The notes below the pieces were generated by a model. The model did not search any database. It was given only the letters and a program-made list of their open reading frames with translations, and was not told the origin of the DNA. This document shows, piece after piece, positions 127-36,096 of a DNA stretch of 37,421 bases (position 1 is the first letter of the stretch; each line of letters starts with the position of its first letter). A program made the translations under genes and the position numbers. This stretch comes from Octopus bimaculoides (lineage: Eukaryota), in contig NC_068983.1 in the NCBI RefSeq assembly GCF_001194135.2, positions 108,477,338 to 108,514,758 on the forward strand, read 5' to 3'.

Positions 127-474
127 TATATGGCAAGAAGAAAATGGAGATAATCCAGAGGTAGTATTCATCAGCTGTTAGACATTATATTATGTCTATT
201 TATTAATTTAAAACAATTCTAATAATATATTTATACACGTGTAAAGTACTAGTAATTTCTAGAATAGAAAAAGAAAAGCAGTTTCTTTCAGCTGTTTCTG
301 CCAAAAGGTCACAGTACCACACATGTTATTACATTTTTTCAGTGTACTGTAGTGATCTGTAGATAAAATTAGGATACTTGGGTGTGTCTCTAGGCTTCGT
401 CAGATAGTTTATACGATAAACCAAGAAGTTCAGAGGGTTAATTTATGCATATATATGAATATATATACACACAC

Positions 475-518
<44 letters not shown>

Positions 519-1583
519 NNNNNNNNNNNNNNNNNNNNNNNNNNNNNNNNNNNNNNNNNNNNNNNNNNNNNNNNNNNNNNNNNNNNNNNNNNNNNNNNNN
601 NNNNNNNNNNNNNNNNNNNNNNNNNNNNNNNNNNNNNNNNNNNNNNNNNNNNNNNNNNNNNNNNNNNNNNNNNNNNNNNNNNNNNNNNNNNNNNNNNNNN
701 NNNNNNNNNNNNNNNNNNNNNNNNNNNNNNNNNNNNNNNNNNNNNNNNNNNNNNNNNNNNNNNNNNNNNNNNNNNNNNNNNNNNNNNNNNNNNNNNNNNN
801 NNNNNNNNNNNNNNNNNNNNNNNNNNNNNNNNNNNNNNNNNNNNNNNNNNNNNNNNNNNNNNNNNNNNNNNNNNNNNNNNNNNNNNNNNNNNNNNNNNNN
901 NNNNNNNNNNNNNNNNNNNNNNNNNNNNNNNNNNNNNNNNNNNNNNNNNNNNNNNNNNNNNNNNNNNNNNNNNNNNNNNNNNNNNNNNNNNNNNNNNNNN
1001 NNNNNNNNNNNNNNNNNNNNNNNNNNNNNNNNNNNNNNNNNNNNNNNNNTATATATATATATATATATATATACATACATACATACATATATATATTTCC
1101 TGTGTTAGGAAGGGTGTATTCCTGCAGTGGTTTGTATTTTCCTTGCATATAGATATACACATATGCATAAACATACGATGTGTTTATGGTTGAGGGTCTT
1201 TCACCCCCATCAGGGGGTGAAAGTTTATATTAATAGTTATGATAGCAGCTGGTACTAAAGGTAGTAAAGGTACTAATTCTCCAGGCAGTTACCAAGATAC
1301 TACATTAGGTTCTGTTAAAAAATAACAGAAGAAATAACAGCAGCTAATATAGTATCTTGGTAAACGCCCAGAGAATTACTACCTTTACTACCTTTAGTAC
1401 CAACTGCTATCATAACTATTAATATAAACTTTCACCCCCTTAATGAAGACATTGATTTCAGGCCCTCAACCATAGACACATTGCATGTTTATGTATATGT
1501 GTATATTTATATGCAAGGAGAATACGAACCACTACAGGAATACACCCTTCCTAACACATGAAATATGTGTGTGTATATGTGTG

Positions 1584-1626
<43 letters not shown>

Positions 1627-1841
1627 ATACGTATGTATATATATGTATTTCTCCTTTTATGTGCCTTTTCATTTCTATAAAAACTGTACCCCTCTCAAAC
1701 TCCAATATTTACTTCGATTATACTATCATTTCTCTTTCTCTTTTTATGCATTCTCTAATAAGAATATTCTACTACACCTACTAATAACTGATTCTGTTAT
1801 AAGTGTGTACATGCATATATGTATGTATGTATGTAAGGGTT

Positions 1842-1885
<44 letters not shown>

Positions 1886-2202
1886 TATATTAGCCCTCTG
1901 AACTTCTTGGACTATCTTATAAACTTTCTAACAAATCCTAGAGACACACCCAAGTACCCTAATTTTATCTACAGATCACTACAGTACATTGAAAAGATGG
2001 AAATAACATGTGAGGTACTGTGACGTCTTGGCAGAAACAGCTGTAAGTAAGTGCTTTTCTTTCTCTAGTCTAGAAATTACTAGTACTTTACACATGTATA
2101 TATATATTATCAGAACTGTTTTAAATAAATAAATAGACATAATATGTTTAACAGCTGATGATTACTACCTCTGGATTCCCTCCACTTTCTTTTTGCCATA
2201 TA
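127..2202. repeat. Giant diverged inverted repeat (fold-back) centred near 1310-1342
   Basis: 127-455 is the reverse complement of 1878-2202 (tatggcaagaagaaaatggagataatccagaggtagta vs tactacctctggattccctccactttctttttgccata). About 1093-1308 is the reverse complement of about 1343-1566. (TA)n tracts sit at mirror positions. Roughly 85-90% identity by eye. Confidence 0.93.
519..1049. other. Assembly gap (N run) in the left arm of the palindrome
   Basis: Run of N flanked by (TA)n. Confidence 0.99.
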
Positions 2203-2367
2203 AATTAAGGGTAAAACCACTTATTATTCTTTCCTAGTTATACTCAGTAGTGTAACTGCCATGCAATAACCAACACTTGTGTATTAATTGTGTATTCTAC
2301 CAGCAGTATATTGGATAGATACTATCTCTTAGTTGGTTGGATTCACAACCTCTAACACTCTTTGAAA

Positions 2368-2406
<39 letters not shown>

Positions 2407-2416
2407 NNNNNNNNNN
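2407..2416. other. Assembly gap within a (TA)n tract
   Basis: Run of N. Confidence 0.99.
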
Positions 2417-33042: not shown

Positions 33043-33077
<35 letters not shown>

Positions 33078-33157
33078 TATATCTATATAGAAAAGATCAC
33101 AAATAAGGATTAGAAATAACCACAGCTGTTTTGGTAGCATTTTCTTGATGCACTCAC

Positions 33158-33241
33158 AGATTAAATCATAGCATAAATCCACCAACTTCAGGTAAAAGTT
33201 TAAACATTTATAAACAGGCGAGGTAAAACCTTGAATATGAC
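33158..33241 (-). CDS. Putative 84-nt coding exon (G)HIQGFTSPVYKCLNFYLKLVDLCYDLI, product unknown
   Basis: Acceptor gttgttgaacag, donor gtgagtg, one open frame (phase 1 to 1), in frame with 37108-37193. Confidence 0.55.
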
Positions 33242-34420
33242 CTGTTCAACAACTAGCATGATGAATATATGTGATATTTTAAGAAAGAACAATCAAATTT
33301 ATAGAGAAAGTGAAGTAAATGAACATTCTAGGTGCAAAGAGGTCAAAACAATCCTATTTTTCAATTTGTTATCTTAATTCGGTTATAGCCCCGACCAGCT
33401 GTGAGGAAGGACAGGCCATCCAAAACAACTCAAGGAAGATCAGATAGATAAAACAGACAATGGGGTTACTGAACGACATAAAACTGCCATTATCATTCCA
33501 CACTAGTACACACATTCAATTTTAGACATATACATTCATTTTCTTTTCACATAAGTACACGCTTTACATGTAAAAACATATCTACCTGTGTATATACATA
33601 CACAGATGCATACACACATGCTGACAGGGGAGGCAACCACCCCATGACTGACAACATATCTACCTGTGTATGTACATGCAGATGTGCACACATACATGCA
33701 TGATCCATACATACACAACCCGCATCGTATAGTTACAAATAATATAGAAATATAAACCAAATAATATGATATCAAGTAATAATATAAGAAGTATATATAA
33801 TATAATAAAAAATACAATCAATAAATCATAGTCATAGAGTTTGTAAGCCATATGCTTCACTATCAAAGATTTCACTATTTGTAGAATAAAGATAGTGGAT
33901 TAGTATGGTAAGAATGTGTAATAAAGAGGCCTGTGACGTAATGTAACATATAGCTCAAACAATGCCTACAGCCCAAGATAGTATACTGAACTACATTAGA
34001 GAATATTGATAAAAAACATTAAGTGATGTTGTCTGAAGTGAATTAGGTAACTGGTTTAAAATATGAAAATGTTTTTCTAATATTATTTTTTTTCTAAGTT
34101 CATGAGACTTATTAAGGATATTTCCAATAATTGGGGATAGCAAAAGATGCACCCATACCTATCATTTGAATATGTTGACACATATTTTTATTATCTTCCA
34201 GGTAATTTGGAATTTAATTATTTTGTTTTACAATTCATAAATTTTTTCATGAGTGACAACCCTAGCCTTATTACAGTTATTGAATGAAAAAAAAATGACT
34301 GTAAAGTTTTTGCTTGAATTTGCATGAAGTGGAACCGATGTAGCTATAAGTGTTTAGTTTGATTATTGCATCACATCTATATATAATATTTTTGGTTAAG
34401 CATAAATTATTGAGAAGACA

Positions 34421-34833
34421 TACTCTTTACTCTCTTTCTCTTTTACTTGTTTCAGTCATTTGACTGTGACCATGCCGGAGCACCGCCTTTAGTCGAGCAA
34501 TCGACCCCAGGACTTATTCTTTGGAAGCCTAGTACTTATTCTATTGGTCTCTTTTGCCGAACCGCTAAGTGAAGGGGACGTAAACACACCACCATCGGTT
34601 GTCAAGCAATGTTGGGGGACAAACACAGACACACAAACATATACACACACACACACACATATATATACGACGGGCTTCTTTCAGTTTCCATCTACCAAAT
34701 CCACTCACAAGGCTTTGGTCAGCCTGAGGCTATAGTAGAAGACACTTGCCCAAGGTGCCACGCAGTGGGACTGAACCAAGAACCATGTGGTTCGTAAGCA
34801 AGCTACTTACCACACAGCCACTCCTATGCCTAT
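34421..34833 (-). mobile_element. Family A SINE, full length, relatively young
   Basis: Reverse complement of 3028-3444 at high identity. Confidence 0.92.
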
Positions 34834-35163
34834 AGAAATTTTTGTTTAAAATTACATAATTTAGGAGATGTATGGCCATTAGTGCTATGAGCATTATTCA
34901 AAGATGGTATGGAATTTTGACTATTGCTAAATATGATAGGATTATCCAAATTATTTAGGGTTGCATAAGAGGCATTGGGATTATCGCTACCAGCAATAAA
35001 TCTATGAGAGTTAAAACAATTATCTTGATCACTAATGATTACAAAATGGTTTCTAGATTTGCTAAGGCTAAAAAGAAAATGTTTATTGAAAATATGGTTA
35101 TATTTGCTAGATGAGGGAAGTTTTTCTCTGAAGAAACAAACAGCTCTTCAGAAAGTTTCGTAA

Positions 35164-35220
35164 TAATATTGGTTCCTCAAGGTAGGTTAAACTATGTAAG
35201 TTCTGACGGCTATAATATAT
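35164..35220 (+). repeat. About 56 bp direct repeat, copy 1 (copy 2 at 36282-36340)
   Basis: taatatt(g/a)gttcctcaaggt...aagttctgacggctat followed by (TA)n in both copies. Confidence 0.85.
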
Positions 35221-35594
35221 ATATATATATATATATAATAACATTAGGGACCAAATCCAAAATTGCTATCTTTATCTTATGATATTTACTTTGTTTTATA
35301 TTATACTCATTTATTGTGCTTTTAATTATTAATTTTTCTATATGTGATAGTGGATTTTCATCGATGAGTTCTTGAAACTTGGTTCTTTTCCCTAAAACTA
35401 TATATTTATATATATATATATATATAATATAATACAGGATAAAATCTTTATAAGAATTTATCAAGTAGTCAGCGTGAAAAAACCCCATAAGGAAAAAAAC
35501 TCATTGTTTTTTTCCCATAAATATATATAATTTATATAAGGGCATTAACTATATAGTAATGCCTCACGCTTAGAGGGACTAAATATATATATAT

Positions 35595-36096
35595 ATATAC
35601 ATGCAAACAAGAAGAAAGCAAAGACTGAAAAATTTCAGATTTTGATATCTAAGAATAAGCATGTAGATATTTATTTATGTATTAATAGATCAAACTTACA
35701 TACAGAACAAACGACAGAAAAAATTAAAGGGGAGTTCAGAGACTCATCAGAGTTCAGAGACTCATCATAATGTTGTTAGATGTAGTTCACCAAAATATAC
35801 AACCAGAAATGGAAACATTTAAACATTGGATAAATCGAGCCTCCATCATCAAGGTAGAAGAAAATTTTGCATTTCAGATCATGATGCAGAGATCTGAAAT
35901 GTAGGATTTTTTTCTACCCTGATAATGGGGACTCAATATATTCAATGTTTATTTGCTTCCATTACTAGCTGCATATTTTGGTGAGCTACATCTACCAATA
36001 TAGTGATAAATCTGTAAGTTTGGTCTATTAATATATAATATCTATATGTTTATCTGAAGTTCTGGTGTCTTTGCTTTCTTTTTGGTTGCATGTATA
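35595..36096. repeat. Diverged inverted repeat of about 500 bp, loop 35881-35890
   Basis: 35765-35880 pairs with 35891-36006 (catttcagatc/gatctgaaatg). Outer tacatgcaa.caa.aagaaagcaaagac (35598-35625) pairs with 36067-36094. The left arm has an insertion of about 60 bp. Confidence 0.9.

Follow-up and report, generated by a model that had tools for sequence, protein, structure and literature searches.

Diverged palindromes with TA ends beside microsatellites in a 37-kb stretch of the Octopus bimaculoides genome

Described elements and the octopus palindromes

Small DNA elements that target TA microsatellites are known from plants. SaTar elements are 380-1700 bp long with terminal inverted repeats (TIRs) of up to 250 bp (SaTar12 has 180-bp TIRs in 380 bp), 62%-95% of them have microsatellite flanks, in many cases (TA)n, and in guayule and rice they form arrays of unrelated elements (PMC5907723). 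The MuTAnT elements behave like SaTar (PMC4486113). Here we describe five palindromes, A to E (Table 1), in a stretch of 37,421 nucleotides of Octopus bimaculoides (assembly GCF_001194135.2, contig NC_068983.1, positions 108,477,338 to 108,514,758; hereafter, the window), and we consider it somewhat probable that they are the decayed relics of small hairpin DNA transposons without coding capacity that belonged to several unrelated families, of the MITE (miniature inverted-repeat transposable element) or fold-back type. Like SaTar, MuTAnT, Micron and TAFT, they are unrelated small elements with long inverted ends and (TA)n flanks, in arrays whose members are separated by microsatellites, and region 1-3010 of the window has the same layout. 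The plant elements are non-autonomous Mutator-like elements (MULEs) and produce 8-10-bp duplications outside microsatellites, whereas D, which is the only octopus element outside a tract, shows TA only. Judged by its ends, D, without an 8-10-bp duplication, contradicts membership in the plant MULEs. In addition, SaTar arrays are never nested, whereas octopus palindrome B sits between the arms of A. Our literature searches found no animal counterpart of the SaTar, MuTAnT, Micron or TAFT type and no description of the TA-microsatellite association in cephalopods.

Other described systems share part of this architecture. The palindromic, Tc1/mariner-derived MITEs Stowaway of plants and MADE1 of human, which together with SaTar, MuTAnT and Micron come closest to the octopus palindromes, are likewise small and non-coding, consist mostly of two inverted arms, have TA at both ends and give a hairpin RNA if transcribed; the octopus termini, however, lack CAG(T), and the elements are 240-500 nt (2 kb for A, including its inner material) compared with about 80 nt for MADE1. 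Drosophila Foldback (FB) elements have arms of tandem subrepeats and 9-bp duplications. Long inverted arms make up most of the element in both cases, whereas the octopus arms have no tandem repeats detected by Tandem Repeats Finder (TRF) except for an 18-nt duplication in E; the other TRF rows correspond to TA-rich tracts at the flanks or the centre. Human palindromic AT-rich repeats (PATRRs) do not move, are nearly perfect and are polymorphic. What they have in common with the octopus elements is an AT-rich palindromic sequence of several hundred bp, capable of cruciform extrusion and of breaking, but the octopus arms are 10-21% diverged, which weakens cruciform formation. Finally, a Harbinger repeat of Xenopus is itself approximately a palindrome, forms double-stranded RNA (dsRNA) alone and, with no partner required, undergoes heavy editing by ADAR (PMC5625713). 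Harbinger/PIF elements differ in duplicating TWA, not TA.

Anatomy, TA ends and decay of the palindromes

The original prediction had reported four unrelated palindromes with arms of about 78-90% identity, three of them ending at TA-rich microsatellites. Inverted repeats were found at all four places, the measured identities were 78.7-90.1%, and A, C and E do abut TA microsatellites; the count itself was too low, since the window holds six inverted repeats, and both B, at the centre of A, and F were missing from the list. The palindromes share no sequence, as had been stated: there were no cross-matches at word size 9 and no significant common terminal motif after correction for multiple tests. 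One candidate motif, common to the termini of A and E (GCAA..GAAGAAA), had P = 0.005 as 1 of 48 comparisons and was rejected as not significant. We also compared the long inverted repeats of the window with those of 40 dinucleotide-preserving shuffles by using blastn with low-complexity masking; the real sequence contained long inverted pairs and the shuffles contained none, which puts the palindromes far outside chance expectation.

In all of A-E, the inverted arms extend to the element ends with a complementarity of 79-90%, and the loops of B-E are only 0-65 nt long. The 17-nt loop of B is in turn a small hairpin (CTGTTA/TAACAG). Each of B, C, D and E is contained in one contig. The arms of A, on the other hand, are on different contigs because the gap at 519-1049 lies between them, and their spacing and orientation therefore rest on scaffolding. 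The 90% identity of these arms and their ordinary substitution spectrum indicate that they are neither a duplicated contig nor alleles. For F, two inverted copies of a dispersed repeat are the better reading: its spacer is unrelated DNA holding (ATT)n and a fragment resembling a short interspersed nuclear element (SINE), TA flanks are absent, and a third, weak copy of its arm is present at 10741-10904.

TA is the outermost paired dinucleotide in all five elements A-E; with a TA frequency of 0.10-0.11 in the window, the nominal probability of this is about 1e-5. For the adjoining microsatellites, we counted a (TA)n tract as 12 nt or more. Such tracts cover 3.6% of the window, and the probability that a boundary placed at random touches a tract is 0.038. 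Three elements touch (TA)n under this strict definition, and B does so under the TRF definition (P of about 0.002-0.005, permutation; three of the elements share one cluster). A, B and C should not be taken as independent observations because all of them lie in one TA-rich cluster of 3 kb. The adjacency is not general to octopus repeats, as one of five SINE 5' ends was beside (TA)n. TA-rich tracts are present on both flanks of B and E, as expected for insertion into a tract, and in region 1-3010, TA tracts alternate with A, B, U, C and further modules.

The longest open frame within A-E has at most 73 codons. Chimeric queries of joined open frames (A and B; then the SINE and C-F) against 5.8 billion protein clusters gave nothing for the palindromes, and their sole match was the SINE-derived exon of an annotated O. 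bimaculoides protein (P0121). The mismatches between the arms comprise 105 transitions and 46 transversions; on the plus strand, they would give 48 G:U and 57 A:C, and 10-21% of the positions are unpaired. These mismatches look like neutral drift without a sign of RNA-stem maintenance on either strand. The identities of the A and B arms are statistically equal (90.1 vs 88.3%, P = 0.50), while C, D and E, at 79-80%, differ from A and B (P = 3e-5) and are an older class.

The relationship between A and B may be read in two ways. They may form one palindrome of 2.07 kb with its axis near 1326, which requires the gap at 519-1049 to hide a mirror copy of U (no partner of U is visible in the window, where it has microsatellite matches only). 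Alternatively, a central TA tract of A may have received B and U as insertions.

The flank of palindrome E offers a comparison with a putative empty site. Repeat G, to the right of E, has a second copy at positions 9459-9615 of a 25-kb locus on O. bimaculoides chromosome CM046609.1 (L003), with 80.5% identity over 159 nt. Before the L003 copy, a (TG)n(TA)n tract runs on uninterrupted, and palindrome E is absent. The presence of G and the TA tract without E fits a later entry of E into the tract; as a comparison of paralogous sites, it appears supportive, not decisive. Both G copies (36097-36330 in the window and 9459-9680 in L003) have a TA-rich microsatellite before them and another microsatellite after them. 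After the copy in the window come (TA)n, (TC)n, again (TA)n and then a SINE head in inverted orientation, that is, several unrelated repeat modules joined through microsatellites.

Table 1. Palindromes, tracts, gaps and repeats in the window (hyphens in the terminal sequences separate the flanking or outermost TA from the element)
Feature	Position	Strand	Description
(TA)n tract, imperfect	1-130 (131)		TRF period 2, 65 copies; abuts left end of A
Palindrome A	131-2198		Ends TA-TGGCAAG...CTTGCCA-TA; aligned arms 124-463 and 1870-2205, 302/335 = 90.1%
A, left arm	131-448	+	Starts TA-TGGCAAGAAG; on contig left of gap
(TA)n tract	449-518		At inner end of A left arm; enters gap
Gap	519-1049		531 N (size estimated); separates the A arms; (AT)n entering from both sides
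(TA)n(CATA)n tract	1050-1095		Left of B
Palindrome B	1096-1563		468 nt; arms ~1096-1317 and 1335-1563, 88.3% over 256 aligned nt; 17-nt loop 1318-1334; ends TA-TTTCCTG...CATGAAA-TA
TA/TG-rich tract	1566-1648		Right of B
Segment U	1649-1843		195 nt, non-palindromic; between TA tracts
(TA)n tract	1844-1890		At inner end of A right arm
A, right arm	1891-2198	-	Followed by TATA only, then unique DNA
(TA)n tract	2371-2448		Abuts left end of C; holds 10-N gap
Palindrome C	2449-2711		Arms 2445-2547 and 2613-2715, 79.6% over 103 nt; 65-nt loop without TA repeats; TATATA only on right side; ends TA-CATGTTA...TAACATA-TA
SINE	3024-3444	+	~420 nt, tRNA-like, internal (TA)n(TG)n; 90% identical to copy at 34427-34834
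SINE fragments	3443-3717, 13930-14289, 36436-36579
Inverted repeat F	11066-11246 and 11712-11892		181-nt arms, 87.8%; 465-nt spacer
Palindrome D	20138-20381		Arms 20138-20259 and 20260-20381, 78.7% over 122 nt; loop 0; no microsatellite; TA at either end (20138-39, 20378-79)
D, between the TAs	20140-20377		Ends TA-TTTTTTTTC...GGAAAAAA-TA
Reverse-transcriptase fragment (RVT_1)	23187-23543	-	E = 4.5e-6; cut by gap 22312-23186
SINE	34427-34834	-	As at 3024-3444
(TA)8	35584-35599		Abuts left end of E
Palindrome E	35600-36092		10-nt loop 35881-35890; core arms 35758-35880 and 35891-36013, 79.7%; ends 35596-35625 and 36067-36096 match at 93%; ~55 extra nt in left arm, including 18-nt tandem duplication (TRF 35732-35767); ends TA-CATGCAA...TTGCATG-TA
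TATA(CATA)3, then repeat G	36093-36330	+	Directly right of E
All gaps	519-1049, 2407-2416, 22312-23186, 24030-24154, 25499-25581, 27149-27563, 29578-29587, 36375-36384

Origin of the palindromes

The hairpin shape, the TA ends, the lack of coding capacity, the unrelated families, the association with TA tracts, the neutral decay and the comparison at repeat G together point to a MITE-like origin. Of the origins that had been proposed, that of several (TA)-targeting fold-back or MITE families gives the best fit, with its unrelated non-coding hairpins, TA ends, two-sided tracts and the empty site at G; the mobility, the multicopy status and the transposase superfamily of A-E are what we infer on this basis. 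Under such an origin, a transposase acting in trans would excise an element at its inverted ends and insert it at a TA dinucleotide, and duplication of the target would leave TA on both sides of the element. A (TA)n microsatellite would be a run of such target sites, and short TA tracts could also lengthen after the insertion. Elements would then collect in or beside TA tracts, giving arrays in which (TA)n separates unrelated modules; region 1-3010 has this appearance. The arms of an inserted element would drift apart neutrally to the identity of 79-90%. The palindromes are most likely of an ordinary nature, namely old MITE-like relics.

Several points weigh against this interpretation. The TA ends are ambiguous, as a self-complementary TA target duplication is indistinguishable from the last two paired bases of a palindrome, and the element ends were delimited post hoc. 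The long tracts of A, C and E are one-sided, with only TATA or TATATA opposite; these lopsided tracts need an insertion near the edge of the tract or a later one-sided expansion. The equal identities of A and B fit one palindrome of 2.07 kb as well as they fit a nested insertion. No second copy of A-E was found within the 37-kb window or the 25 kb of L003, a sample too small to inform on the copy number, and none of A-F was found in L003 or in 20 kb of Argonauta hians (L006). A 22-mer of the octopus SINE had zero matches in viral, metagenome and prokaryote collections, though it is present in L003, indicating that those collections are without octopus DNA and are uninformative on copies of the palindromes. 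Tc1/mariner ends typically start with CAG or CAGT. None of the five left termini in Table 1 starts with CAG and, as far as their sequences can tell, they do not support membership in Tc1/mariner in particular. In favor of a MITE-like origin, O. bimaculoides has abundant TcMar-Tc1 and Mariner families, which use TA as their insertion site and could supply a transposase (PMC8967140).

The original prediction had also offered a local mechanism in which self-complementary (TA)n primes snap-back synthesis. Such priming predicts (TA)n at the symmetry axis, and it was contradicted by the hinges of B, C, D and E, none of which has (TA)n; the hinge of A is hidden by the gap. A related explanation, in which (TA)n is a stop or a fragile site and not a primer, seems doubtful to us but has more in its favor. 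Here, the palindromes would be single-copy local inverted duplications: after a break or at a stalled fork, a 3' end folds back on a few self-complementary bases, copies its own strand, stops at a structure-forming (TA)n and is rejoined. The one-sided tracts of A, C and E would suit this process, as the other arm ends after two to three TA units and is followed by unique DNA, as if copied into the tract. The palindromes reach the very centre (D is loop-free, and the loop of B is the small hairpin mentioned above), no further copy was seen in the window or L003, and the indistinguishable identities of A and B with possibly mirrored TA tracts are consistent with one 2-kb event. However, D is without any microsatellite, and TA ends in five of five elements would be unpredicted for D. 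The two-sided TA-rich tracts of B and E are more simply explained by insertion and, for E, the rejoining must land exactly on the microsatellite of repeat G. Moreover, tight palindromes of such size in animal genomes are usually derived from transposons. A Penelope-type insertion, which had been the other suggested mechanism, was not supported either. Penelope elements were taken to carry a reverse transcriptase with a GIY-YIG endonuclease and to have hammerhead ribozymes in their terminal repeats; no hammerhead ribozyme or other Rfam family was found in or next to the palindromes, and the only reverse-transcriptase fragment is more than 2.8 kb from any palindrome. One relative of this fragment (L001) adjoins a weak match to Exo_endo_phos, as in long interspersed nuclear elements (LINEs) bearing an endonuclease, and a Penelope origin was rejected.

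It is quite unlikely that certain palindromes are pairs of separate dispersed-repeat copies that lie, or were scaffolded, in opposite orientation, an explanation concerning F and possibly A. The third copy of the F arm and the unrelated spacer with its SINE-like fragment agree with it, the arms of A are on different contigs and each is flanked by TA tracts on its own, and L003 shows inverted pairs of SINEs and LINEs to be common in this genome. If the scaffold is wrong, A would consist of two copies of a dispersed 318-nt unit, both with TA tracts at their flanks. Against such an origin, B, C, D and E are tight hairpins in single contigs with short loops, and the 318-nt unit of A, taken alone, lacks inverted ends and would not be a cut-and-paste element. 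Functional genes for hairpin RNAs (precursors of microRNAs (miRNAs), hairpin RNAs or endogenous small interfering RNAs) under selection are a very improbable source. The predicted hairpins are very stable, and palindromic MITEs can give rise to miRNA genes, e.g., MADE1 and mir-548. The Rfam search, however, with gathering thresholds and in E-value mode, gave only generic miRNA-hairpin matches far below threshold (e.g., 69 bits vs a gathering score of 195), and G:U mismatches were not above A:C with a tenth to a fifth of the positions unpaired. Assembly artefacts made at microsatellites have an equally slight chance of explaining the palindromes. Every gap in the window is beside a microsatellite or a TA-rich run and A spans one of them, but chimeric or duplicated contigs would give near-identical arms, unlike the observed difference of 10-21% with a normal transition bias, and B-E are within contigs.

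Predicted double-stranded RNA and the surrounding repeats

If transcribed, each of the MITE-like elements would fold into a long imperfect dsRNA. The z-scores of the RNA folds were -16.2 for D and -22.3 for E, and the earlier idea that the palindromes would serve as long dsRNA and as candidate ADAR substrates is structurally plausible, provided that they are transcribed. Among the surveyed animals, O. bimaculoides is, beside the frog, one of the highest for hyper-editing and for genomic long-dsRNA potential; the repeats behind the octopus dsRNA were not analysed in that survey, which had no repeat annotation for it (PMC5625713). Self-folding palindromic elements could supply part of the octopus dsRNA without a neighbouring inverted copy. 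If the elements are multicopy and targeted to TA microsatellites, a behaviour known from the SaTar, MuTAnT and Micron elements of plants would extend to an animal, and it would help to explain the repetitive flanks of octopus microsatellites. Single-copy elements would instead suggest that a local mechanism forms palindromes at (TA)n. That an endogenous fold-back process bounded by structure-forming (TA)n and yielding single copies, not transposition, adds to the octopus dsRNA load and hyper-editing, or, in a milder version, that these are the first animal elements of the SaTar type, seems unlikely to us, and the ordinary explanation is more likely on the present evidence.

The window is AT-rich non-coding eukaryotic DNA, with a GC content of mostly 0.27-0.40, dense in microsatellites and interrupted by eight N gaps. 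All eight gaps are bordered on at least one side by a microsatellite or TA-rich run, mostly (TA)n. The gap at 2407-2416 (10 N) is within one (TA)n tract and outside palindrome C, and those at 29578-29587 and 36375-36384 are also of 10 N each. A Pfam profile search with ten frames of higher complexity had the reverse-transcriptase fragment as its sole match, and no exon was found. The closest relatives of this fragment are only about 65% identical; two are filed as Escherichia coli and Salmonella, and look like animal DNA contaminating bacterial assemblies. The loci of the relatives (L001, L002, L004 and L005, from ENA) have no repeats in common with the window.

The SINE of the window is 91% identical to copies in L003, a locus which was found via P0121. 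The SINE carries its own internal (TA)n(TG)n, suggesting that some TA tracts of this genome were born inside SINEs, and a 95-nt core of it is conserved at about 88-90% in Argonauta hians (L006, 1517-1611). Another repeat, at 20450-20645, is 70 nt to the right of palindrome D and starts directly after a short (TA)5. It matches L003 at 5063-5244, 6593-6683 and 6825-6905 with 79-85% identity, and our guess is that it is a LINE 3' end. The stretch at 18000-20100 is C-rich (GC content, 0.42-0.45; GC skew, -0.45 to -0.62) with stop-free frames of 129, 213 and 151 codons on the plus strand; the one frame searched against Pfam (18011-18271) had no match, and an exact look-up of the 213-amino-acid frame gave no record as a gene product. 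In the locus of Argonauta hians, a distant octopod, a further palindrome touching a TA tract is present at 7717-7893; it is about 165 nt long, has a hairpin nested at its centre (7786-7852) and abuts (TA)7 with its right end.

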